Positions 3,001-62,557 of a DNA stretch of 64,000 nucleotides are shown in pieces. Location of the stretch: the sequence record MG655267.1. One strand, 5' to 3'. How positions within the stretch are numbered: position 1 is the stretch's first letter; the number at the start of each line of letters is the position of its first letter. The notes below the pieces were generated by a model. The model had not been told where the DNA came from, searched no databases, and worked only from the letters and a program-made list of their open reading frames with translations. Made by a program: the position numbers and the translations under genes.

Positions 3001-5137
3001 CGCGTTCATTGGAATCTTCCCCTTCACGATCAGGACGATAGTTCGGGTTAGCAATGAACTTCTGCATCATCTCCCAGTACATCTCGTGGTTAAAGACATC
3101 CTGGCCATTAACCCGTTTGATGACGCCCATGTCTTTGAGCTGTGCCCGACTACCACTGTTGGCCATGGTATTCAGTGACTGCTCGACATTCGGCATATAC
3201 TGCGACTGGGCCTGCATAACGTTAGACAGGTTGTTACGCATCTGTGCCAGTTCGGGTGCATCGCCAATCTGATAATCACCAAAGGCTTTGGCCCGACCGG
3301 TTGCTTCCCGAGTGTCGAAACGTTTGTGCAAGAACTCATTGATCTCCTGCACTGCTTCTTTATTGGCATTGCCCCAGCCACTGGACTTCAAGTAGGTGTT
3401 GACGTTGAAGCCATCACCCGCTTCAGCATCCCGGGCAAAACGCATCGCTAATGCCACACGGGCATTGGGTGAGAGCTCCTGGTCGGGGTCGAGGGTTTCC
3501 ACCATGGTATTGAAGGAACCTGCGGCCGAGGAGAACTCATTGCGATTAAAGATCGACGAACGCAGATCGACGTTCGCCCGTTTCTTGGAAGTGAAGCCAC
3601 CCTGGATGTGGTTGAAGTGCACTTCCGACACCGACCCGACATCTGCTTCCAGTTTATTGGCAATCGCCGTTTGCTGGGCCAGTTGTTTAGTCAGTAAGCC
3701 TGGAATCACTTCCACCAATGAACGCCGTGACATCTGATCCCAAACAGCCGGTTCAGTCAGGTCTTTCACGCCAGGGTTGTGCAACCGAGTACGGTTACCC
3801 ATGGAGGCCGGCAATTGAAAGAGGGCGTTATTCAGGAAGGGGTTGACGACGCGCTTTTGTAACCGCGTGTGCCATTTATTCCCCTCGGCATTCGGATCGA
3901 AGTTCTCATCAAACGACTGACGGTTACGTAACCAACCATTGATCAGACCCGGTGCCGCATTTGAGTAATAGCTTAAGTCATGACCCATGCGGTTCAGACC
4001 CGGGTTACGCGACAGTGCAGGACGGGCTAAAGAGGAAAGCATCATCGGCAACATACCGACCAGTCCTTGACCCGCCATCTGTCCGTAGTCACGGGCGCCA
4101 AGCGAACGCCCCATCATGCGGGCCTGTTGTGCACCCATCATGGCAGCACGGGCGGCAGCAATGCCGCCCGAAGCGCGGTGGTTCATATCCTGGCTACGCT
4201 GATCCACCATGTTAAAGACATTGTCAAACAGACGGTTACCAAATTGCGAGACCGTACCACCTAACCCACCCAGTGCACGTTTACGAATCAACTCACGGGC
4301 CGAGGCAGAATGACTCATCTTTTCGAAGTCAGTTAAGCCGGTATTTTTCACCAGACTTGACATGGCGTCCAGACTGCGTTTGTAGAAACGTTCTTGCATC
4401 TTGCCAATTGACAACTGCAGTTTATACGAACGGTACTGGAGCTCTAATGACTTGCGCTGGTAGTTGGCAGTGAACTGCTCATTAAAGCCAACGGTACGGG
4501 CTGTGAGGCGATGGATGCCTTGCATGAAGGCCAGACTGTCTGCAGAGACGCTCGCTTGTCTGGTGGCGACTGCGGCGGTCTGTGCCATGCTCTCTTTATG
4601 CAGGGCCACAGCCAGCTGACTCGACTGCAGCGTAGCCTGCTGCATCATGGTGACGTAGTCATCGTTCTCGTTACCGGTTGAGCCGTCGTCCAGACCGGGA
4701 TCGGCAGGTTTGGTGCTGGAGACCGAATAATCGATGTCTTTATTCTCAGCCCAGACTTCAATTTGCTTTAAGACCTTCTCCGGCAATTTCCCACCGTACA
4801 TCGATAATGCATCGAGGGTTAGGTCTTTGATGTCATTGACAGAGTTACGGGTATTACTTTTAACTTTATCGTATAGGTCATCTTTGAATCTTGCTGCGCG
4901 ATCTTTTGCATCAAACGCAGGCGAAAACGATGCGGGTAACAAAGAGCGAATGATACGCTGAGGAGTGCCTTTAGTGAACACTTCCTCTTTGGCACCAGTC
5001 CAAAGGCCTGCGGCGAACTCACGAATCGCCCCGCCTTTACCCTTCTTCTTCGTACTTGCATCGTCACCGAAATCGAAGTCAAAGTCCAGGTCAAGGTCAC
5101 CCAGATCTTCGTACTCGACTTTGACATTCTCGGCCAT
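1..5137 (-). CDS. Tape-measure/large tail protein (phiKZ gp181-like), 3'-truncated by the window edge (>1700 aa)
   Basis: ATG at 5137 (MAENVKVEYEDLGDLDLDFDF...). The same frame is open wherever I translated it, down to base 2. It contains Gly/Ala-rich TMP-type repeats (GIGGILGGAAMGAAIGSVVPVVGTAIGAIAGG), an acidic/Arg-rich patch and a duplicated 'LR..YG...WF..RF.P.YL' unit. It lies divergent from the vRNAP genes, as in phiKZ-like phages. It is absent from the ORF track, probably because it has no stop codon in the window. Confidence 0.85.
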   Translation of the reverse strand, partial: MAENVKVEYEDLGDLDLDFDFDFGDDASTKKKGKGGAIREFAAGLWTGAKEEVFTKGTPQRIIRSLLPASFSPAFDAKDRAARFKDDLYDKVKSNTRNSVNDIKDLTLDALSMYGGKLPEKVLKQIEVWAENKDIDYSVSSTKPADPGLDDGSTGNENDDYVTMMQQATLQSSQLAVALHKESMAQTAAVATRQASVSADSLAFMQGIHRLTARTVGFNEQFTANYQRKSLELQYRSYKLQLSIGKMQERFYKRSLDAMSSLVKNTGLTDFEKMSHSASARELIRKRALGGLGGTVSQFGNRLFDNVFNMVDQRSQDMNHRASGGIAAARAAMMGAQQARMMGRSLGARDYGQMAGQGLVGMLPMMLSSLARPALSRNPGLNRMGHDLSYYSNAAPGLINGWLRNRQSFDENFDPNAEGNKWHTRLQKRVVNPFLNNALFQLPASMGNRTRLHNPGVKDLTEPAVWDQMSRRSLVEVIPGLLTKQLAQQTAIANKLEADVGSVSEVHFNHIQGGFTSKKRANVDLRSSIFNRNEFSSAAGSFNTMVETLDPDQELSPNARVALAMRFARDAEAGDGFNVNTYLKSSGWGNANKEAVQEINEFLHKRFDTREATGRAKAFGDYQIGDAPELAQMRNNLSNVMQAQSQYMPNVEQSLNTMANSGSRAQLKDMGVIKRVNGQDVFNHEMYWEMMQKFIANPNYRPDREGEDSNERGSNVNPGAELGEMGRETLDNLRRGVTDSLGNLRGRLTREQEEEIRAQLSQARANSPEYYQVVLQQLRARYGEVAVNRIARRLDNSLGQSLRDRVNGFGGAGAAGAAGGSGGLGDSLRNMGESASNLFGKINSVRPDTSAVKQALLNAASSGKEALRNATTELQRRFGRQAVEEAASEIAQEAEVVRSSGVFNDGTADRASRTRLPSEGITAPDAGSASETAAIVQAQLDNNALLRETIGVLASVRDSVTATKDATIAQVTGDPDIMKDSVNERQGWLRKLSGRMSNQGKSSGLIRKVFKSLPNINSPVLTVAKWTTVMPAVLGFKATRGLWRMLRDKKREDASDPDHDGVRNNSVADLIRRRAQQKKEREEAQHAHDSDDHAKDKEKPTTLFGLVAGLFSSVTGLVSGIKEFGILGGLAKFLGLGWIGDIVKGIGSVISGGKGVMDELSDALGDDEGGEEEGGRRRRRRRGGRRNRGGGGPRPRGGLISRLAGKAARGVRGLGRGIVGRTGGMLGRGVAGNLKLLVKGGGIVTAGVSALEAWDSYKAGDNAGVAEAAGSGIGGILGGAAMGAAIGSVVPVVGTAIGAIAGGAIGALGGGAIGRSLYTWFNDPGLLQQMRLRQYGVPDNDSSHVSAILKLEAALEPYVKTTDDGYASLDPKAPIAQLGSLFVDDPNDREQVEQFAGWFLHRFKPVYLTHKAVAKQVLPSQAFMDLDKSTDEAAKYEIAKRAQQFDESSDHPYMFTGRIFPDLNATDRKQTEALVKDVLDRLRNKAQKMTTGKSASVFATGMDKVASSRELSSDMVKAINPNGDIPELKTVGHKESSWFTGDRTVVSAGDLLGGLLPKAGQPMDDLTALRMKVYGLPTLDVDRVSTLLQLELVMANKIKFADNGATFDGKASDIYRVVAASFGLSPSNQWSYKSWEPWFTRRFLPAYLAFASTVYTQTGDSRPTLAVPKMPPELKFAAATAMTNAKYSDGVNAISVWTIKTSPWSTGELNDD

Positions 5138-5179
5138 GTTAACACCTTTATCAAGTTGCTGCTAAAAGGATCACTCATC

Positions 5180-6796
5180 ATGCGGTCAGCATTACTACCT
5201 TTTAACATTAAGATTACTGACTCCAAGCAGATCCCCTGGAGAATGATGCGACCCGTTACGTCGCTCGATATTTACGACGGCCTAACCACTGAGCTGAACG
5301 ATAACGGTCTGTACTCAATTCCCATTTTTGGACGCGTTGGATCGGAAGAACGTGATGAGCGATTTAGCTACATCCACATCAAGTGCGCCGTGTTCCATCC
5401 TGATATCTTCCGGGCACTGACTGCATTAAAGCAGATGTACGCAGGGATTCTCTCCGGTAACGTGTACGCGACATGGAGCGAGGAAGAGAAGGACTTCATA
5501 AAATCTACCCCGCTTGATGGCGACACCGGTTTTTCCTTCTTTGTTAAACATTGGAAAAGCATAGAATTTAAGCAGACTGGCTCGCCGGCCCGTAGCGACA
5601 AGATCGCCCTGGTCGAGAAGTTCAAGGATGTGGCCCTCTATCGTAACATCCTGGTCTCACCAGCAGGTATCCGTGAAATCCAGATTGATGAGCGCGGGCG
5701 CACCATCGAGAACGAAGTCAACTCCCTGTACCGTAAGTTATTGTCAGCCGCGAACACCATCACTGATGATCCTTCTGCCGCCGATACCTCACTGTATGAC
5801 TCGGTGCGTTGGTCATTACAGAACCGCTTCAATGAGATCTACAAAAGTTACGCGGACATGCTGGAAGGTAAACGCGGGATCTTACAACAGAAGTGGGGTC
5901 GTCGTCGTATCTTCAACGGCACCCGAAACGTCATCACGGCCGCCCCTATCGGTACAGCCACACTCGGTGCGTTAAACTCCCCGCACATGAATGACACCCA
6001 GATCGGTCTGCATGAACTGGCCCGTGGTGCATTGCCGTTAACCATCCATGGTTTATTGAATGGTTGGCTGAAGCATGTCTTTAATGACGGGACGCGGATT
6101 CAGGTCATCAACCCGAAGACCCTGAAACAGGAGTCGGTGGAAGTCGACATCCCGACCGTCACCAAGTGGACGACCCAGGAAGGCCTGGAGAAGCTTATCG
6201 CGGGCTTTAAAGATGTGACGTTGCGTAACAAGCCGATCACCATCCAAGGCCGCTACATCGGTTTGGTGTACGCTGACAACGATCATTTCCGGGTGTTCGG
6301 GGATATCGATGAATTACCTGCTTCGTTTAATCGCGAGCTGGTTCATCCGATGACCTACACCGAGTTACTGTACCTGTGTTTGTACCAACGCTGGAACACT
6401 CTTTATATGCTGGTTACTCGTTACCCCATTACGGGTATGGGGTCGGTATACCAGACCAAAGCGTTTGTGCGCACAACCATCAAATCCAGCGTGAAGATCG
6501 AACTCGATGCCGAATGGAAACCCATTCCTGGCGCGTACGCTACCGCCTTCCCGATTCACGATCGCTTTGCTGAGTTCATGGATTCGCTTTCAGTTCACCC
6601 CAGTCGCCTTGGCTTGCTCGGTGGTGACTATGACGGTGACACCATGTCAGCAACCATCCTGCTCGGTGACGATGTCCTGCGGGAATGTGCGATGTTGCTC
6701 TCACGGCGTGAATCGTACATTACCGGCCGCGGTGAGTTCTTGATCGATGTCACCAATGAAACCTTGGACTTTACCCTCAAGGCGCTGACTTCTTAA
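5180..6796 (+). CDS. Virion RNA polymerase beta' subunit, catalytic (middle) fragment (phiKZ gp180-like)
   Basis: Contains RLGLLGGDYDGDT (DxDGD Mg-binding motif) and GKRGILQQKWGRRRIFNGTRNVI (beta' conserved region). AAGGA RBS at 5166-5170 supports the ATG at 5180. Confidence 0.92.
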   Translation: MRSALLPFNIKITDSKQIPWRMMRPVTSLDIYDGLTTELNDNGLYSIPIFGRVGSEERDERFSYIHIKCAVFHPDIFRALTALKQMYAGILSGNVYATWSEEEKDFIKSTPLDGDTGFSFFVKHWKSIEFKQTGSPARSDKIALVEKFKDVALYRNILVSPAGIREIQIDERGRTIENEVNSLYRKLLSAANTITDDPSAADTSLYDSVRWSLQNRFNEIYKSYADMLEGKRGILQQKWGRRRIFNGTRNVITAAPIGTATLGALNSPHMNDTQIGLHELARGALPLTIHGLLNGWLKHVFNDGTRIQVINPKTLKQESVEVDIPTVTKWTTQEGLEKLIAGFKDVTLRNKPITIQGRYIGLVYADNDHFRVFGDIDELPASFNRELVHPMTYTELLYLCLYQRWNTLYMLVTRYPITGMGSVYQTKAFVRTTIKSSVKIELDAEWKPIPGAYATAFPIHDRFAEFMDSLSVHPSRLGLLGGDYDGDTMSATILLGDDVLRECAMLLSRRESYITGRGEFLIDVTNETLDFTLKALTS

Positions 6797-23395: not shown

Positions 23396-23597
23396 TTCTG
23401 TCTCCTTCACTATCGATAGTTGTTTGTTTGTCACTTGGGTGAAACTTAAGCTTGCCTTAATTAAGGGCTACCACATACGTCCTGATTACCCGGGAGTAGA
23501 AAGTAAATGGTATGGTTCACTATTAGCTTTAACCCTAGCAGTGCCATAGAATAAAGTGTTATTCTTAACATATTTGCCTATAGAGGGTTTTCTCCTT

Positions 23598-24560
23598 ATG
23601 TTTAAGTCCCCTTATGATACCACCACGGCACGCTGGACGCCGGGTCTGGAAGGTATCCGAAAAGAATTGCGGGTAGCAAAAATCGAACGACGTTTAACAT
23701 CCGCATCCACGCCGCTTCCAGTGAGTGACCCTCTAGGCGCCTCTCCTTCTCCTAGCGATAAGCTGTGGTATGTCGTGTCAGGTGTGCCTGGAAACGAACG
23801 CATTCCACCGTTTATGCATCCACTGGAATTTACCGATACGTTGGGTCGCACCAACATGGCCATTGATTTGCGCTCCGCTATCGGCATGGCGCCGGACGGT
23901 CGTACTCTGGTTGTGCGTAACCGCAATGGTCAACTCGATGCTGAACAACTGATCATCCGTCTGAAGGCAACCGCCTACTGGATGTTGGAAAGCAGTGGTC
24001 CCCGTGACCTGATGAACTTAAGTGGTGTCCCGATGCGTATCTTTGCACGCTGGATCACTGAGAACATCTCCCGTCGGGTTGGTCTGGATTACGATGCGGT
24101 TCCCCGTTATCTGGTTTACGCCTCCTGGTACTACTTCTGCCTGTTCTTTAATAAAGAGCAGATGAGCGATGACCTGCGCCTGATTGCCATCAACAAGATT
24201 GCCACTCAAGGCGGGTTGCGTCGTGACATCGTGGCAGACGTATTGCAGGATGTCGGTTACGTTGGCAGCATCAGTGAGTTCTGTGAAACGGCACAAGCAG
24301 TTGTCGGTGCAGATCAGCTCAGCCTGGTTGACGTGAAGACGTTGATCACCTTGGCCGGTAATGCCTGGTTTGGTCAGAATGCCAAAGAAGGTGGTGGGGT
24401 TGCCCTCGAGTATCCACCGCTGTTCCTGTCCATGCTCTACGGGGCGATGGGGAACAAGGCGTATCGCAACACCGCCATCGGTACCATTGCCGATCGCAAA
24501 GATTACCAACGAGACGGCGCGGTATTCACACGAGCCTTCGTAGGAACGATTAACGATTAA
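23598..24560 (+). CDS. Virion structural protein (phiKZ gp28-like)
   Basis: Divergent from the sheath gene, first of three genes before terminase; assigned by synteny. Confidence 0.6.
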   Translation: MFKSPYDTTTARWTPGLEGIRKELRVAKIERRLTSASTPLPVSDPLGASPSPSDKLWYVVSGVPGNERIPPFMHPLEFTDTLGRTNMAIDLRSAIGMAPDGRTLVVRNRNGQLDAEQLIIRLKATAYWMLESSGPRDLMNLSGVPMRIFARWITENISRRVGLDYDAVPRYLVYASWYYFCLFFNKEQMSDDLRLIAINKIATQGGLRRDIVADVLQDVGYVGSISEFCETAQAVVGADQLSLVDVKTLITLAGNAWFGQNAKEGGGVALEYPPLFLSMLYGAMGNKAYRNTAIGTIADRKDYQRDGAVFTRAFVGTIND

Positions 24561-42115: not shown

Positions 42116-42468
42116 CAGGTATTTGTAAATAAATACTAGATATCTGCTATTACTATGTAAACTACGACGCTCCGAAAATCCCCCAAGATAAAGGAGTCAT
42201 AACCTCTCCGTTATGCGCCTCGTAGTTTTCTTTTGAGACAGGCAAGGACGTCGACTGGGTTCAGCTGATACTGTAAAGTGTTGCTGTGTGTGCCCGGTCC
42301 CTTGCCGTCTCCTTTTTCTCGATTTGTGCGATTCTCTTCCAGGCTGTTCTTACCTGATCTCGTGTCAGGAAACAGATCGAAGACAGACATGCGAATCAAC
42401 TTTGGTAGTGCCTACTATATACACACTTAGCTGTAAATTTTACTCAAAAGCAATATTAAGGATGACCC

Positions 42469-42796: not shown

Positions 42797-42872
42797 TGGT
42801 CTATAGTTCAGTCGGTAGAACAGCGGACTGTTAATCCGTAGGTCGCTGGTTCGAATCCAGCTAGACCAGCCA
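42797..42872 (+). tRNA. trnN: tRNA-Asn (GTT) with encoded CCA
   Basis: Full cloverleaf: TGGTCTA/TAGACCA acceptor, GTTC/GAAC D-stem, GCGGA-CT-GTT-AA-TCCGT anticodon arm, GCTGG-TTCGAAT-CCAGC T-arm, then G-CCA; 76 nt. Confidence 0.97.
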
Positions 42873-43520: not shown

Positions 43521-44174
43521 ATGTCAACCGAAATGACCATTTCTCGTGCACTGGCTACAGTGAAGTCTTTGAATGTCCGCATCAAAGATATCTCTAAAAA
43601 GCAGGTGCTGATTCTGCCAACCGCCGGTACTGGCGACATGCAATCGGTGATCAACAACAGCATCACTGTTACCGATGCTGAAGCCGCCATCCAGAATAAC
43701 TGGAATGCGCTGAACGACATGATCAAAGTGCGTAACGATATTCGTGCGAAGATCATCCTGTCGAACGCCACAACCAAAGTGACCATCGCCGGTAAAGAAT
43801 ACACCATTGTTGAGGCATTGGACTTCCGCAACTCCCTGGTCGAAAAGAAAGACACGGTTGAGTGCCTGAAGCGCAACTACGACTCCACAATGAAAGTTCA
43901 CCGCCAGCAGGGCGACATCTACGAAAAGCGTTTAAGCGATGTGCGCTCCGAAGCCCTGGCCTCCGGCAAGAAGTTTGATGAAGCCAGCTTGAAGACCTTC
44001 ACCGATCCAATCGATGTGAAGATGAAACCAGGCCTGATCGATCCTCTGGGTATCTCAGCAGTTATTGAGAAGCTGGACAAAGAGATCGCTGACTTCGAAC
44101 TTAACGCCGACTACGCGTTGTCCGAATCTAACGCAACGACCAAGATCACTGTTGAACTTGGTAACATTGCTTAA
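43521..44174 (+). CDS. Long helical/coiled-coil protein (217 aa), putative partner of the downstream ncRNA
   Basis: AAGGA RBS; heptad-rich; terminal motifs MTISRALATVKSLNVRI and IDPL...LSESNATTKITVE. Confidence 0.85.
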   Translation: MSTEMTISRALATVKSLNVRIKDISKKQVLILPTAGTGDMQSVINNSITVTDAEAAIQNNWNALNDMIKVRNDIRAKIILSNATTKVTIAGKEYTIVEALDFRNSLVEKKDTVECLKRNYDSTMKVHRQQGDIYEKRLSDVRSEALASGKKFDEASLKTFTDPIDVKMKPGLIDPLGISAVIEKLDKEIADFELNADYALSESNATTKITVELGNIA

Positions 44175-44270
44175 CCCGTATTAAAAGGCTTGTCTTCGTT
44201 TGACGAAAGATCAAACACCGCCTTCCTATTTGGCCGGATGGAAGTAAAATAACCGGCCAGCCATTATACA

Positions 44271-44336
44271 TCTGTAGGTCGCAGGTTCGATTCCTGTCGG
44301 GGTGAAACCCGTAGCTCAGTCGGTTAGAGCAGCAGA
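44271..44336 (+). ncRNA. Circularly permuted tRNA-like domain (T-arm, closed acceptor, D-arm)
   Basis: TCTGT-AGGTC-GCAGG-TTCGATT-CCTGT-CGGG-GTGAAA-CCCG-TA-GCTC-AGTCGGTTA-GAGC-A-GCAGA. Confidence 0.85.
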
Positions 44337-44409
44337 ACAACTGCTTATGCTAAAAGCAATGATCTTTGGGATCATCAATGGTGTACTGTGAGCACCTTGA
44401 AATCACAGG

Positions 44410-44533
44410 TCTAAAGCTTAAAGCTATAACGTATAATGACTAAAGCTCTAAAGGTTTAAACTTATAACGTTAAAAAGATCTACACTCCCTGATGACTGTG
44501 TTCGTCGGGCTATAACGCTAAAACCTTTTAAAC
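44410..44533 (+). repeat. Imperfect 7-9-nt tandem units (N-N-TAAAG / N-TATAAC)
   Basis: TCTAAAG CTTAAAG CTATAAC GTATAAT GACTAAAG CTCTAAAG GTTTAAA CTTATAAC GTTAAAAAG (44410-77), then CTATAAC GCTAAAAC CTTTTAAAC (44510-33). Confidence 0.75.
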
Positions 44534-44648
44534 AAATCCTGGGTATTCCTCCGCTGTGAGGATGGGTAATGTGGAGTGTGGTCTGCCACGTATCGCCGCC
44601 AGGCTGTCTTGCGGAGACAAGTCTTTCCCTTTTGCAATAGGTGACCTA

Positions 44649-44819
44649 ATGACAGGCACTGCATTAATGATCATTGAGCAACCACAACCGGAATTCAATA
44701 TCCCGTTGAGGTCGCCTTATCCTACCCTTCATGACGTAAGGTTTTCTATGTTCCCTGTTATGGGTGAACCTGAGAACGAAGGGTTTGAACAAGATTCAGA
44801 AACTGACGCATTACATTGA
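44649..44819 (+). CDS. Small acidic hypothetical protein (56 aa)
   Basis: AGGTGA RBS before the ATG at 44649; the ORF-track start (44556) lies inside the structured RNA. Confidence 0.5.
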   Translation: MTGTALMIIEQPQPEFNIPLRSPYPTLHDVRFSMFPVMGEPENEGFEQDSETDALH

Positions 44820-44860
44820 GGAGATTCAATCGCGCAGGTTCTTAACCGACTAACGCCAGG

Positions 44861-45088
44861 GTGACTTGTGTTATCTTGGTAAAAGGTGAACGCGTCGTTA
44901 CAGCGCATACGACTGAATGGGCCGATCCCCCCTTCGGAGTAATATTAGCCCAGATCCATTGCACACCGATAAGTCAATGGCTAGCCAGACACACAAAAAA
45001 CTATTATGCTTCGACAGATGGTAGGTGCCTGATTACTACAATTCGATTCGATACCTCAACTAAAAGGCGGACACAAGGGCCGTTATGA
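44861..45088 (+). CDS. Possible small protein (75 aa)
   Basis: GTG-start ORF with a weak RBS. Confidence 0.35.
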   Translation: MTCVILVKGERVVTAHTTEWADPPFGVILAQIHCTPISQWLARHTKNYYASTDGRCLITTIRFDTSTKRRTQGPL

Positions 45089-45108
45089 GTGAAGCACCAG
45101 GAAACTAT

Positions 45109-45160
45109 ACCTTGGTAAGGCCCCAGGCTTTTTATCCTTACCAAGGTTCTCTTTCTTTTA
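45109..45160 (+). terminator. Intrinsic terminator-like hairpin
   Basis: ACCTTGGTAAGG/CCTTACCAAGGT 12-bp perfect stem followed by a T-rich tract. Confidence 0.6.
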
Positions 45161-45267
45161 CTACCTGATAATGGGTGGATGCCTTAGTCACCTTTCTTTC
45201 ACAGAGGCAACAACCTAAGGCGTCTGCCCGCCCTATAACCCGAGTCGTCTAGCGACAAGACACCGTC

Positions 45268-45348
45268 AGACCCATTTGGTAACAGCCTAACTTACCTGTT
45301 ACCCAACCTATGACGGAAACAGGTGGTTCAACTCCACCTCTTGGGTCT
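45268..45348 (+). ncRNA. tRNA-like fold with a T-loop arm and no canonical anticodon arm
   Basis: AGACCCA/TGGGTCT closing stem, GGTAACAG/CTGTTACC hairpin and AGGTGG-TTCAACT-CCACCT T-arm. Confidence 0.5.
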
Positions 45349-45431
45349 TAGGTATTGGCTTAGGCAAACTCCGTCGCGGCTTTACCCTCAATAGGCTGCG
45401 TTGCGTAAGTCAGTACCGTGCTGTGCGTCGT

Positions 45432-45580
45432 ACTCCCTGATGAGGCGCCCGACGTTAAAAGGCACGAAACGGGGACAGAGGATACTCCATCGGTGATTGC
45501 AATCAACCACGCTGGGGTTTATACAGGCACTTGAGAGACACGCTGGTTTCTCGTTGCCTGTCCCTTTGTCCCGTCGGAGT
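45432..45580 (+). ncRNA. Hammerhead ribozyme (type I topology) with a large stem-III insertion
   Basis: Stem I ACTCC/GGAGT; core CTGATGA (45437-43); imperfect stem II; GAAA (45466-69); stem III ACGGG(G)ACA/TGTCCCGT; GTC cleavage triplet at 45573-75. Confidence 0.75.
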
Positions 45581-45984
45581 CCCTTGCGTTCCTGGAGGGA
45601 TGACACCGCGTTAAGACTGATCCCCTTAACGAAGTTGCAATAGCCGGGGGTGATTCTTGCAAAGGTTACTCACAGCAGACTGCCTCCGCCAATTGCGGAT
45701 GGCTTAGGCCCTCAGTCCGTCAGGAAGTTGTCGTTGAATAAGTGACAGCTGGACTAGGGTTGCATTATAACCCGGCAAGTGTGCAGCCTGTTTTTTCTTC
45801 ATGTGTACCTGAACCGGTTCAGGAGCCTACAGATGAGGGAACGACGGGAAGCATATTGCTACCGATCATTTGCTGTGTGACCGGGCCAAGGATGGCATAT
45901 ACCGGAACCAGTAACCGTATTCAGCGCAGGTGCGCTTTCTCTTCCTTATCTTGTGGTTAAACCGCGCCTGTCTGGATCATATGT

Positions 45985-46012
45985 GCCGGGGTCACACCTG
46001 GCGCTTATGCCG
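45985..46012 (+). terminator. Hairpin plus TTATGCCG closing the RNA island
   Basis: GCCGGG-GTCACA-CCTGGC, then TTATGC at 46005-46010. Confidence 0.6.
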
Positions 46013-46037
46013 TCTGAGTTGTATCCTTTTTTACTCC

Positions 46038-46045
46038 TACATTAC
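46038..46045 (+). promoter_or_regulatory. Early promoter-like box TACATTAC
   Basis: One mismatch to the consensus, about 28 nt after TTATGC. Confidence 0.55.
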
Positions 46046-46087
46046 GAAGCTGATATACCCATCAATTCAATTTAAAGGAGTTTAGTT

Positions 46088-46510
46088 ATGAAGAACGTTA
46101 CTATTGCTATTGGTCGTAATCCGCTGTCCAACCAGAAATGGATTCTGGATCAGATCGTGAGTCTGGTGAAGTCCGGTAAGTCCGACATCTTCATCGTCAA
46201 TACCGACTCACGGGTTTCCACTGCGGTACTCAATGCCTTGAAAGAGTATACGAAGGATGATGCGGAATACACTCGCTTGGTTGCTGAGAACGGTGTCATG
46301 TTCCACACAACCGAGACCGAAGACCTGCAAACGCTGGATGATGCTAAGATGAACAGCCGGTCGGCGATTCTGGCCAACATGCTGTTCAGCCTGCCATTGG
46401 TCAAACAGTGTCGTGATCTGGCGCGTCATCACGTCCCGGTCTTTGTGAGTGCCACACCTGCCATGTCTGGTAAGGTGCCGGCTTCCGCCCATACCAAGTT
46501 CCTCGATTAA
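46088..46510 (+). CDS. Hypothetical protein (140 aa)
   Basis: AAGGAG RBS. Confidence 0.8.
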   Translation: MKNVTIAIGRNPLSNQKWILDQIVSLVKSGKSDIFIVNTDSRVSTAVLNALKEYTKDDAEYTRLVAENGVMFHTTETEDLQTLDDAKMNSRSAILANMLFSLPLVKQCRDLARHHVPVFVSATPAMSGKVPASAHTKFLD

Positions 46511-46519
46511 GGATAGCCC

Positions 46520-46981
46520 ATGGTAAATCACCTGTGGGGTCAGTTGTCGGAGCGTGCAATTCGCGCTGCTGCTACTGACCTACGGTTGAAGCCTGTAGAG
46601 AGCCTGCCCATGTGTTGGGCAGAGCTCCTCTCCATCGGGATCACCAAACCCCTTGGACGCTTTGACGTTCTTACCCATATTGGCCGTCGTCCTGAGCTTC
46701 ACTATTTAACTGTGTTAGCAGAGGAAGGTGTCCGTTTCATCGATGTGTTAGCGGAAGATACTGATGCCCGTCACGCACATCGCGCTCGAGCAAACGCAGT
46801 CTGCTATTATGACAAAGATCAGAAGCCGCAACTGTGTTGGTTATACCTCTCCCGTGGTGAGTTAACGGAGGGGAATTTTAGTCGTGCTGTGCGTGAAGGT
46901 ATTCATCGTGTCGCTGGGAAGTTCCCGGAGGACACCAACACTCACTTCTGTGATCTATCGGGATTGACCCATGCTAAGTAA
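46520..46981 (+). CDS. Hypothetical protein (153 aa)
   Basis: AAGGA RBS. Confidence 0.75.
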   Translation: MVNHLWGQLSERAIRAAATDLRLKPVESLPMCWAELLSIGITKPLGRFDVLTHIGRRPELHYLTVLAEEGVRFIDVLAEDTDARHAHRARANAVCYYDKDQKPQLCWLYLSRGELTEGNFSRAVREGIHRVAGKFPEDTNTHFCDLSGLTHAK

Positions 46982-47113
46982 AAAGATTATGACTGAACTG
47001 CGCCGTCGGATTAATAAAGGCAATAAGCCTCAGCAGTCAGGTCGTTTGACCCATGTTCTTGTAGACAGCAAGTCTACAGGCTTTAAACCACAATAACGTT
47101 TCTCGGTGTCCTC

Positions 47114-47659
47114 ATGACTCAAACACAAAGTTATTCCGTTAATGCCTTTGACGAAATCGTCATCACCGCTACCCGTCACGCGTCCAACCATATTCACTAC
47201 CAATTCGCAACCCCTGGGGAAAAATCGGTAGTGATCCATGCGTTTGACTCAACCACAGAGCTGACCACCCAGGAGGCCTTTAAACGGGCTTATGCCGAAC
47301 TGGCACACTGGGTAGGGGTTAAGGCCGGTTATGATCACCTGCAGCGTAACGATGCCATTCCGTTGCTGATCTCGGTGGCCCGTGATCTGTTTGTTGATAA
47401 CATTTTCAAAGACATGAAAGATCTCAGCGGCGAGTTCCTGCACAATGGCGTGTCTGTCAACTGGAAACGCACGTTGATGATGGATGTGTTACTGACCAGT
47501 TTTGAAACCCAGGTAAGTGACCATATCAGCGAAGATGGTTTGGGTGTTCGGACGTATTCCAAGATCGAGCTGCGCACCCACTCGAAAGAAGACAACCTGT
47601 CACCAAGCCTGCAGTACGCGGAATACGCGGGGGTATTTGATCGTGGTACAACTCTCTAA
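47114..47659 (+). CDS. Hypothetical protein (181 aa)
   Basis: ORF in a co-directional cluster. Confidence 0.7.
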   Translation: MTQTQSYSVNAFDEIVITATRHASNHIHYQFATPGEKSVVIHAFDSTTELTTQEAFKRAYAELAHWVGVKAGYDHLQRNDAIPLLISVARDLFVDNIFKDMKDLSGEFLHNGVSVNWKRTLMMDVLLTSFETQVSDHISEDGLGVRTYSKIELRTHSKEDNLSPSLQYAEYAGVFDRGTTL

Positions 47660-49211: not shown

Positions 49212-50186
49212 ATGTCAAAACGTTTAACCCGCATCTACGCTTGTGGCGGTGCTGCCATCAACATCACCGCGGCGCAGAAGGACCAGCACGATCAACTGGG
49301 CTTCTCTGACCTCAGCGTATCACGTATCGATACTTCGGATAAGAACATCAAACCAGGCATGTCACCGAACAGCGTCTACATCCTGGAAAACGCAGACGGT
49401 TCTGGTAAAGAGCGTAAACACAACTACAAAGCGATCGTGGCCTCACTCGAACAGATCCTGGCGATGCACAAACCGGGCGATTACAACATCGTCATGATGT
49501 CAGCCTCAGGCGGTTCTGGTTCGGTCATCGGTCCGGTAATCATTGGCGAACTGCTGAAGCGTAAGATCCCAGTGGTTGCGCTGGTTGTGGGTACCATCGG
49601 TTCTGAAACTGAAACGCAGAACTCCATCAATACCCTGAAGTCCCTGGCCGGCGTCTCTGAAGCTCAGAAAGCCCCACTGGTGATGTCATACTTCCCGGTG
49701 AACCAGCACTTCGATCAGCGTGAAGTGGACAAGCAAGTCCTGACCACCATGACGCTGTTGCTCAACCTGTTCGACTCGAAGAACATCGAAATCGATTACA
49801 AAGATATCGTGAACTTCCTGAACTACACCAACATCCGCAACACCCGCCCTGGCCTGGTTGGCCTCGAAACGTACAACGACGACGAACTGCAGACCATCGC
49901 CGGTACCTCGCCGTTGTCCATGGCGTCAGTGTTCAAAGATGATAACCGTCCGTTCCTGCCGGTTACCCCGGACTACCATGCCACCGGTACCCGTGACCAG
50001 GACATGAAAGATGAGCGTATGCAGTTCAATGCGCACTATGTCATTACCTCAGCGCCGGTTAAAATGGCGTTCGAAGATCTGAACAAACGTATGAAGCAGA
50101 TCACTGATCAGCAGCATACTCGCGGCCAGAACTTCAACCTGCTGGGTGATGGCGACCAGGGTGATGATAACGGGATGTTCCTGTAA
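49212..50186 (+). CDS. phuZ: Phage tubulin PhuZ
   Basis: T1 motif IYACGGAAINI, tubulin signature SASGGSGS, T7-loop IDYKD and an acidic C-terminal tail DDNGMFL; 324 aa. Confidence 0.93.
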   Translation: MSKRLTRIYACGGAAINITAAQKDQHDQLGFSDLSVSRIDTSDKNIKPGMSPNSVYILENADGSGKERKHNYKAIVASLEQILAMHKPGDYNIVMMSASGGSGSVIGPVIIGELLKRKIPVVALVVGTIGSETETQNSINTLKSLAGVSEAQKAPLVMSYFPVNQHFDQREVDKQVLTTMTLLLNLFDSKNIEIDYKDIVNFLNYTNIRNTRPGLVGLETYNDDELQTIAGTSPLSMASVFKDDNRPFLPVTPDYHATGTRDQDMKDERMQFNAHYVITSAPVKMAFEDLNKRMKQITDQQHTRGQNFNLLGDGDQGDDNGMFL

Positions 50187-61069: not shown

Positions 61070-62557
61070 ATGATGCATGAAATGCAAGCAGCGCAACCGG
61101 CACTCGTGCAAGAAGGTGGTTTGACAGCTGTTGTGGGAAACCATGACCAACACTTCTTCATGTTGTCGCGTCCACCCATCATTGCTAACGACTATGACCT
61201 CTCGATCGAAGCTGACCGACAAGCCCTGAATAACCATCTGCGGGTGAGTTATGATACGGACATGTTCAGTGTCAAGCCGAAGTGTCAGTGTGGTCATACC
61301 AGCGGCGGTGATAAAGTTGGAAAGCTGTGTGTAAAGTGCGGCACGAAGGTCACCACTGTAACCGAAGAAGAGATTGAGTCTCAGCTCTGGTTACGCAAGC
61401 CTGAAGGTGTAAAGGGCTTCATTAACCCACAGTTATGGTTATTGTTCTTTGAACCGTTTAATGTCAAAGGGTTCAATCCAATGGAGTGGTTTGCAGACCG
61501 TTCCTATACTCCAGCCAAGGGGGGTATGGATTACAAGAACAAAGATGTGTACAAAGTCTGCGCGGACATGGGTATCGAACGAGGCATAAACTCCTTGTAC
61601 GATAACTTTGACGCTATCGTAACAAACCTACTTAACTCTCCGGTCGTGCGTGATCAGGTCACGTCACAAGAAGTGCTGCGTCAACGTTCTGATTTGTTTA
61701 TTAAATACCGTGATCGTTTCTTCTGTGAACACTTACCGATGCCCTCCAAGCTGATGTTTGTGGTGGAATCCAATGCAACCGGTCGCTATGCTGCCCCTGA
61801 GATGAAACTGGCTCTGGATGCGGCGTTAACCGTCTGTTCAGCAAAACGCCAACTGCATACGGTGCGGGATGTGCGCTTTAATGAAAGCATTGCGATTAAA
61901 GTGGTCCGTCAGATCTCGAAGTTCTATGCGACGCATGACAGTGACAACTTTGCGGGTAAGTTAGGGTTACTGCGTAAGAACATTGCTGGGGCAAAACATC
62001 CGTGGACTGGTCGTTGCGTGATTACCTCGCACACCGGCGACCATGACATGGATGAAGTGATCCTGCCACGTTGTTTGGCGATCCCGATGTTGAAATACCA
62101 CATCATCAACAAACTGCGTCGTCGGAACTACACCCCAACACAATGCCTCAAACTGATCCAGGCGGGTATTAAGCAAACCATCCCAGTGATCGATGAGGTG
62201 TTGGATGAACTCCTCGCAGAAAGCCCTACAGCGTCGATACGGGTATATGTGCAACGAAACCCAACCCTGCGTTGGTTATCGAACCGCCGGTTCCATTGCC
62301 GAACCATCAACCGTGATCCAAATGACATCAGTATCCGTATCAGTACCTTATCTATCAAATCCTCGAATGCGGACTTTGATGGCGATGAACTGAACGTGAT
62401 GTTACAGCTGGATAACGTCTCAGCGAACTATGCGGAAGCGTTTGGTTCACACAACTGTGTGCTGGACATGAACACCCCGCTGAAGATCTCTGGTGACGTG
62501 GGTCTGCCGGGTACGTTGATCTCGACCATGAACCGTTGGATGTACAGTAACGACTAA
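61070..62557 (+). CDS. Non-virion RNA polymerase beta' subunit, N-terminal/catalytic part (phiKZ gp55-like)
   Basis: Zn-finger CQCG...CVKCG, GLLRKNIAGAKHPWTGRCVI, QRNPTL and the catalytic NADFDGDE motif. Confidence 0.93.
   Translation: MMHEMQAAQPALVQEGGLTAVVGNHDQHFFMLSRPPIIANDYDLSIEADRQALNNHLRVSYDTDMFSVKPKCQCGHTSGGDKVGKLCVKCGTKVTTVTEEEIESQLWLRKPEGVKGFINPQLWLLFFEPFNVKGFNPMEWFADRSYTPAKGGMDYKNKDVYKVCADMGIERGINSLYDNFDAIVTNLLNSPVVRDQVTSQEVLRQRSDLFIKYRDRFFCEHLPMPSKLMFVVESNATGRYAAPEMKLALDAALTVCSAKRQLHTVRDVRFNESIAIKVVRQISKFYATHDSDNFAGKLGLLRKNIAGAKHPWTGRCVITSHTGDHDMDEVILPRCLAIPMLKYHIINKLRRRNYTPTQCLKLIQAGIKQTIPVIDEVLDELLAESPTASIRVYVQRNPTLRWLSNRRFHCRTINRDPNDISIRISTLSIKSSNADFDGDELNVMLQLDNVSANYAEAFGSHNCVLDMNTPLKISGDVGLPGTLISTMNRWMYSND

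Follow-up and report, generated by a model that had tools for sequence, protein, structure and literature searches.

The plus-strand segment 45432-45580 of Erwinia phage vB_EamM_Bosolaphorus is, as read from its sequence, a complete type I hammerhead ribozyme core with three stems. We consider it very probable that this is a functional type I hammerhead, transcribed with its plus-strand neighbours and separating the flanking RNAs by self-cleavage, where we infer both the catalysis and the transcription. All coordinates refer to the window, the whole 64,000-nt stretch of DNA analysed here, which is identical to MG655267.1, the record of this phage, an Agricanvirus and jumbo phage infecting Erwinia amylovora; subtracting 124000 from a record position gives the window position. 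The phage is phiKZ-like, as the window carries genes for a PhuZ tubulin, for a vertex protein of the phiKZ type and for a split RNA polymerase subunit. The ribozyme lies in a stretch of about 1.9 kb (44175-46087) without a credible ORF, with gp204 on one side and gp206 on the other. All genes around this island lie on the plus strand, as does a tRNA-Asn (42797-42872). In Agricanvirus genomes the annotation of the ribozyme region consists of hypothetical proteins only, or is blank. The features of the locus and of its relatives are collected in Table 1.

Table 1. Features of the ribozyme locus in the window, and corresponding features in relatives (AH06, ZC08 and loci denoted by L numbers).
Feature	Position	Strand	Remarks
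Pseudoknot 5' strand, CGUCG	45426-45430	+	Pairs with loop II 45450-45454; a single base separates it from stem I
Stem I 5' strand, ACUCC	45432-45436	+	Pairs with 45576-45580
Catalytic core C3-A9, CUGAUGA	45437-45443	+	Read from the sequence
Stem II and loop	45444-45465	+	45444-45449 with 45461-45465; G.A mismatch, bulged C; covaries in relatives
11-nt loop II, CGACGUUAAAA	45450-45460	+	First five bases are the pseudoknot strand
Core G12 A13 A14	45466-45468	+	Unchanged in all homologues
GAAA	45466-45469	+	A15.1 is 45469
Stem III 5' strand	45469-45481	+	A15.1 is 45469; 12 pairs, G45474 bulged; partner 45563-45574
Distal stem III domain	45482-45562	+	Two hairpins; predicted by MFE fold and by consensus fold with compensatory pairs
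Hairpin A	~45484-45518	+	Conserved core CAUCGGUGAUUGCAAUCAACCACGCUG at 45488-45514
Hairpin B	45523-45561	+	ACAGGCA/UGCCUGU around GAGAGAC/GUUUCUC
Stem III 3' strand	45563-45574	+	Ends G16.2 U16.1
C17	45575	+	Placed by core geometry; predicted scissile bond 45575/45576
Stem I 3' strand, GGAGU	45576-45580	+	5' end of the downstream RNA if released
tRNA-like RNA	45239-45347	+	Upstream of the ribozyme; five-lineage alignment with compensatory changes
Downstream structured ncRNA/leader, ~510 nt	45581-46087	+	Runs to the gp206 start codon; four-lineage alignment
phiKZ vertex-binding protein (PhiKZ_VTX)	23556-24560		PF25614, E=4.3e-98
PhuZ tubulin	49212-50186		phrog_4733, E=1.9e-139
RNA polymerase beta'-like fragment (split RNA polymerase subunit)	61070-62557		PF00623
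172-aa ORF, phrog_2586	AH06 (L002) 5008-5526; L030 13799-14317 (-)		Matches window ~45100
ZC08 hammerhead	L053 2499-2568; KU356691.1 about 42366-42435		Unannotated, in tRNA array; 13 nt after tRNA-Met
Ribozyme start directly after CCA	L007; L077		tRNA-Arg in L007; tRNA-Leu in L077
Same-strand tRNAs 0.2-2 kb away	L034, L043, L046, L048, L073, L076, L080		
Amidoligase_2-like gene	L007 11604-12242; L043 551-1153; L047 214-813; L048 2964-3620; others	-	
Outer pseudoknot pair, variants			A-U: ZC08, L075, L076, L078; U-A: L077, L080, L074; G-C: L073
Inner pseudoknot pair (-7/loop position 1), variants			G-C; C-G: L007, L075, L076; U-A: AH06

The hammerhead core and its pseudoknot

Hammerheads are a textbook ribozyme class. 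Their cleavage by internal transesterification leaves 2',3'-cyclic phosphate and 5'-OH ends, and position N7 of their consensus, CUGANGA, is free. The original prediction had placed the conserved core nucleotides in this segment, and direct reading of the sequence confirmed every letter: the stem I strands ACTCC (45432-36) and GGAGT (45576-80), CTGATGA, G45444 opposite C45465, GAAA, the stem III strand ACGGG(G)ACA (45469-77) and the GTC triplet (45573-45575) are all present. The core complement therefore reads CUGAUGA, G10.1-C11.1, GAAA, A15.1-U16.1 and C17, with A45469-U45574 as the A15.1-U16.1 pair that starts stem III and TGTCCCGT as the stem III 3' strand at 45567-45574.

Stem I in this phage consists of five base pairs only. 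Stem II is formed by G45444-C45465, G45445.A45464, G45447-C45463, C45448-G45462 and C45449-G45461, with C45446 bulged; the G.A at positions 10.2/11.2 is a U-A in relatives, and the mismatch and bulge could slow catalysis. The stems of the plus strand contain G.U pairs. When energies are computed without the pseudoknot, the predicted nested hammerhead fold lies 10.5 kcal/mol above the minimum free energy (MFE) fold, and the latter is predicted to hide CUGAUGA within an alternative hairpin.

Fast hammerhead cleavage at physiological Mg2+ needs a tertiary contact linking stem I to stem II, made either by two loops or by a pseudoknot. A five-base-pair pseudoknot, absent from the original prediction, joins CGUCG (45426-45430) to CGACG (45450-45454) and is predicted to be the contact that keeps stem I alongside stem II; a sixth pair, G45425.U45455, is possible. 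CGUCG starts 11 nt upstream of C3, and in all true homologues a constant spacing of 7 nt sets CGUC apart from the CUGAUGAG that follows it. Patterns lacking the 5' CGUC requirement still recovered CGUC in every true member. Two of the pseudoknot pairs covary, and the outer pair (-11/loop position 5) occurs as all four Watson-Crick types, C-G, A-U, U-A and G-C. RNAalifold found this helix unprompted. It was left out of our covariance model, and the model-guided alignment was fitted to stems I-III only. Pseudoknots are present in about 40% of hammerheads, across all three types, and are a known means of fixing stems I and II (PMC3088659).

Homologues, covariation and Rfam

Given that BLAST against a phage collection, in near and distant modes, returned Agricanvirus only (near-identical genomes and AH06), we searched for homologues with degenerate patterns. 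Scans of IMG/VR viral and JGI metagenome contigs yielded about 25 sequence-distinct homologues with an identical core layout. AH06 is 84% identical overall; no change is found in its core, stem I, loop II or the first part of stem III, and its sequence diverges sharply and completely right after GGAGU (45580). One member, the cultured Pseudomonas phage ZC08 (Schitoviridae), was found by BLAST with a compact relative as query and offers a convenient laboratory system for testing the subfamily. In one genome each of 185,579 bacterial and archaeal species there were 19 pattern matches, all of which were rejected by the covariance model. Within the limits of the pattern search the subfamily is restricted to phages, its members being found only in viral or metagenomic contigs.

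The covariance model was built from six compact metagenomic members only, with the window left out. It produced one match in the window (45423-45499, 40.2 bits, E=3.8e-9), and it matches all suspected members but not one of the pattern hits that arose by chance. Owing to the long stem III insert, the model aligns the 3' half of the window to a false nearby closure, which we disregarded; the true 3' strands lie about 100 nt away, and the true closure of the stems in the window rests on the anchored comparison and on the relatives. MAFFT was unable to align 3' halves across differing stem III lengths, and an anchored table and the model-guided alignment were used instead.

All 17 sequences of the anchored table pair at positions 1-4 of stem I, with two to four pair types per position, and 14-17 of the 17 do so at positions 1-5 of stem III, with up to five pair types. 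Stem II exists in six covarying versions (GUUGC/GCAAC, GCUUC/GAAGC, GUCGC/GCGAC, GCUGC/GCAGC, GUUCC/GGAAC and GU(N)GCC/GGCAC). The model-guided alignment of the 13 compact members, which is fitted to stems I-III and so favours those stems, has 93.3% of cells paired compared with 70.6% in shuffles and 26-46% in slid controls, and none of 500 shuffles reached the observed values. Both-sided change was seen at 13 of its 20 pairs and at five of the six pairs of stem I. G10.1-C11.1, here G45444-C45465, is G-C in all 13 aligned members; C3-A9 is invariant among the homologues except for N7 = A in L081, and H17, wherever readable, is C, A or U and never G. The CTGATGA/GAAA/GTC core is thus retained among relatives, with N7 and H17 varying as the class allows, and both the core nucleotides and the three covarying helices of a hammerhead were found. 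The core and the compensatory stems of the roughly 25 homologues agree with what had been predicted from the sequence, a complete hammerhead with a putative cut after 45575 and a large insert in stem III.

An Infernal search with the Rfam hammerhead models, proposed as a check on the element, was negative. Scanned at the gathering score, the whole window lacked any hammerhead match, and the region 44000-47500, scanned at E<=10, gave no hammerhead, no other ribozyme family and no aptamer. We attribute this result to the limits of the Rfam models, since even compact relatives whose cores are textbook ones fall far below threshold, scoring 18.3-21.6 bits with RF00008 against a gathering score of 48.5 and giving sub-threshold Hammerhead_3 alignments. 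A match to Rfam is an operational criterion for hammerheads rather than a defining one, and other divergent hammerhead clusters under all Rfam cut-offs have been reported (bioRxiv 10.64898/2026.10.21.760802). No report of a hammerhead from Agricanvirus or any other jumbo phage turned up in our literature search. The hammerhead class, type I and the pseudoknot principle are already known; what appears to be new is that there is a subfamily beyond the reach of Rfam, that it is tied to tRNA clusters, and that a conserved branched domain can sit on its stem III. A subfamily of about 25 members escapes the current Rfam models, yet simple pattern scans find its members.

The stem III domain and the flanking RNAs

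The stem III hairpin measures 11-32 nt in total in compact members, 50 nt in L031, 69 nt in L038, and 104-110 nt in this phage, AH06, L030, L033 and L081 (104 nt in L081, as counted from its sequence). The long form begins with a helix of 12 bp (45469-81 with 45563-74) that opens into two hairpins, which make up a domain of 81 nt seen only in phiKZ-type jumbo phages (PhuZ, PhiKZ_VTX). This domain is dispensable for the fold, as relatives manage with a stem III of 11-32 nt. The core of hairpin A is nearly invariant (CAUCGGYGAUUG..AUCAACCACG) and is kept in five jumbo-phage lineages; hairpin B is variable in sequence and retains its hairpin form. In AH06 the stem III extension changes from ACAGAGG/CCUUUGU to ACGGGGG/CCCCUGU, and hairpin B changes from GAGAGAC/GUUUCUC in this phage to GAGGGAC/GUUCCUC in AH06, both compensatory. 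L030, L033 and L081 have wholly different stem III sequences with complementarity preserved. Folding and covariation agree with the hairpins GGTGATT/AATCAACC, ACAGGCA/TGCCTGT and GAGAGAC/GTTTCTC of the original prediction. Its further hairpin, GAG-GATA-CTC, is unsupported: G45478-G45481 pair with 45563-45566 and extend stem III, with compensatory changes in AH06, and C45485-C45488 are part of hairpin A.

Members of the subfamily lie in or beside tRNA clusters, and three of them adjoin a tRNA 3' end. In the compact lineages the ribozyme of many members is located 190-270 nt upstream of a gene of about 200 aa with a GIEIE motif, which has a weak Amidoligase_2 match (PF12224, 17-25 bits; phrog_2443). 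Genes for tRNA-Leu(UAA), tRNA-Arg(UCU) and tRNA-Met(CAU) follow on the same strand in compact lineages. A common structured RNA after the ribozyme of these lineages was considered and rejected, their leaders not being alignable with one another.

In the window the ribozyme has a tRNA-like RNA upstream, which was called neither by ARAGORN nor by Rfam. Its acceptor is CCCGAG/CUUGGG and its T-arm occupies 45322-45338; the 'anticodon' arm (45263-45316) is long and includes an inner hairpin as well as a conserved 10-nt loop, CCUAACUUAC (45286-45295). The RNA is conserved with compensatory changes in AH06, L030, L033 and L031. A 172-aa ORF with weak P-loop/AAA matches stands directly upstream of this RNA in AH06 and the L030 lineage; Bosolaphorus-type genomes are without it, which indicates an indel polymorphism within the non-coding island. 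Downstream of the ribozyme, the RNA of about 510 nt matches no Rfam family; it is strongly conserved among four divergent jumbo-phage lineages, whose alignment shows extended invariant blocks and 11 compensatory pairs. Within it, a pairing is predicted between ACUCCU (46033-46038) and AGGAGU (46076-46081), the Shine-Dalgarno sequence of gp206. This anti-Shine-Dalgarno pairing is conserved and would be a possible translational switch for gp206. A terminator-like hairpin is also present in this RNA, at 45923-45936.

Other elements of the island were evaluated alongside. A second copy of ACTCCCTGATGA, at 44484-44495, was rejected as a hammerhead: it has no GAAA and no proper closure, and its CTGATGA is CACGCGA in AH06. 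The helix enclosing this 12-mer, ACACUCC (44482-88)/GGAGUGU (44573-79), becomes ACAUUCC/GGAAUGU in AH06, and such a covarying helix around 44482-44579 (+) indicates another structured RNA element. Circularisation of an RNA by means of a second ribozyme was likewise rejected, there being one model match per locus and no other Rfam ribozyme family. At 44273-44336 (+) lies a YrlA-like tRNA-mimic module with a T-arm, a closed acceptor-like hairpin and a D-arm; YrlA RNAs, which are bacterial Y RNA-like, carry such a module inside a larger RNA beside an rsr (Ro60) gene. The score of 44.5 bits (E=6.6e-8) is below the gathering score, 69, and comes from a model that also matches the junction of two tandem true tRNAs in L007; the closed hairpin of the module shows a compensatory change from CGGGG/CCCG to UAGCC/GGCUA in AH06. 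To tie cyclic-phosphate ends to this YrlA-like element we searched for RtcB and Ro60; the 10 large ORFs of the window contain neither a TROVE (Ro60) nor an RtcB domain.

Alternative readings and proposed role

Taken by itself, the motif is unusual and suggestive rather than decisive. A type I descriptor found a single site on both strands of the window (128 kb), even at the loosest thresholds. First-order Markov simulations, using sequence of the same dinucleotide make-up as the window, gave 0.005 matches per 128 kb at stem I >=5, stem II >=4 and stem III >=5, and 0.1 at thresholds (3,3,3). Such a false-positive rate is non-zero, and some GenBank records annotate hypothetical proteins here, as would suit a chance match to the consensus in structured or coding DNA such as the minus-strand 72-aa ORF at 45388-45606. 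We regard this as exceedingly improbable and rejected it, because the core is kept and the stems covary in about 25 homologues from unrelated phage contigs, and a covariance model made from relatives matches the window at this site only. It is these homologues and their covariation, beyond the motif alone, that make the element genuine. The minus-strand ORF was rejected as an explanation since the indels between AH06 and the window inside the element, of 1, 2 and 1 nt, are not multiples of three and break the frame, which argues against coding.

A genuine hammerhead by descent could nevertheless be a slow or inactive relic in this phage, turned by the G.A mismatch of stem II and the large stem III domain into a structural scaffold rather than a processing site; hairpin A, for instance, might be bound by a protein. 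The Bosolaphorus-type sequence has the weakest stem II, hairpin A is conserved in sequence beyond the needs of a plain helix, the hammerhead fold differs from the predicted MFE fold, and there is no Rfam match. Against this, the core is canonical in all long-insert lineages (this phage, AH06, L030, L033 and L081) despite strong divergence of the stems; it varies at the free N7 only, H17 is never G, and the pseudoknot partner is kept. A canonical core with a kept pseudoknot is the pattern expected from selection for catalysis, and we consider the scaffold explanation unlikely. The branched stem III domain could instead sense a ligand, protein or RNA and decide whether stem III closes, in which case cleavage would be regulated during infection. 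Consistent with this, stem III closes only across the 81-nt domain, the internal-loop sequence of hairpin A is invariant in five lineages, the domain is confined to phiKZ-type jumbo phages, and the conserved anti-Shine-Dalgarno pairing in the downstream leader suggests regulation in the region. The extended stem III of 12 bp is, however, long and stable and should form whatever the distal hairpins do, no Rfam aptamer was matched, and the five available lineages fall into about three groups, a sample too small to reveal constraint other than on helices. We also know of no natural allosteric hammerhead, which counts against gating, and we judge regulated cleavage to be a very unlikely account of the element. 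That the domain 45482-45562 is a sensor gating self-cleavage, giving a natural regulated hammerhead in a phiKZ-like jumbo phage, is a doubtful proposal; if true, a gated hammerhead would control, in the course of infection, when the tRNA-like RNA and the large structured leader are released. The phage encodes a PhuZ tubulin, and we speculate that host RNases may be excluded from where the ribozyme RNA is made.

For the preferred reading, a functional type I hammerhead, we can hypothesise a mechanism. Stems I, II and III would form around the canonical core during transcription, the pseudoknot 45426-45430/45450-45454 would hold stems I and II side by side, and the RNA would cut itself between C45575 and G45576. 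The upstream fragment would consist of the tRNA-like RNA, a spacer and the ribozyme, and would carry a 2',3'-cyclic phosphate end; given that the hammerhead is of type I, the whole ribozyme body would stay on this fragment. The downstream product would start with a 5'-OH and comprise only five ribozyme bases (GGAGU), the leader/ncRNA of about 510 nt and the gp206 operon. In this way the ribozyme would be a protein-independent processing site that separates the tRNA-like RNA from the next transcript and fixes both ends. Self-cleavage likely separates the flanking RNAs, and it is from the context that a use for the two products is suggested. The original proposal that the ribozyme matures an RNA in the tRNA/ncRNA island is plausible, because relatives lie in tRNA clusters and here a tRNA-like RNA stands upstream and a structured RNA downstream.

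The closest known systems are type I hammerheads with a pseudoknot between stems I and II (Perreault et al. 2011, PMC3088659). These have the same canonical core, three stems and open stem I, and likewise a pseudoknot of 4-6 bp in place of a loop-loop tertiary contact. In the present subfamily, by contrast, the 5' flank of stem I joins loop II through a near-invariant CGUCG/CGACG at a fixed 7-nt spacing, and Rfam models from known members score it at 18-22 bits at best. Intergenic hammerheads of phages and prophages (the A. tumefaciens ardA cluster, C. scindens, PaP3, Bcep176 and halovirus HF1/HF2) have been proposed to cut polycistronic RNA into units, a role matched by the one proposed here, and for the helicase gene of HF1/HF2 the major transcript has its mapped 5' end <=3 nt from the ribozyme cleavage site (PMC3088659). 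Like the present ribozyme, these sit between genes of long phage transcripts; unlike them, the present subfamily is tied to tRNA clusters or tRNA-like RNAs, with one ribozyme per locus, and its jumbo-phage members carry the conserved branched stem III domain.

Two further systems invite comparison. Discontinuous mammalian hammerheads, reportedly described by Martick et al. in 2008 in the 3' UTR of C-type lectin genes, are said to have an unconserved insertion of hundreds of nt in stem I. They share with the present ribozyme the closure of a helix across a long intervening sequence, whereas here stem III is capped by an insert of 81 nt that is folded and conserved. RiboJ is a synthetic ribozyme insulator in which a hammerhead before a gene leader gives the mRNA a defined 5'-OH end, independent of upstream sequence. 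By analogy, both have a hammerhead upstream of a gene leader, RiboJ being engineered and the present one natural with a putative function.

The non-coding island of about 1.9 kb, in which the ribozyme is flanked by two more conserved and unannotated RNAs, merits experimental study. The association of the subfamily with tRNA clusters, in which some of the ribozymes start right after CCA, points to self-cleavage that would sort tRNAs or tRNA-like RNAs from neighbouring transcripts.
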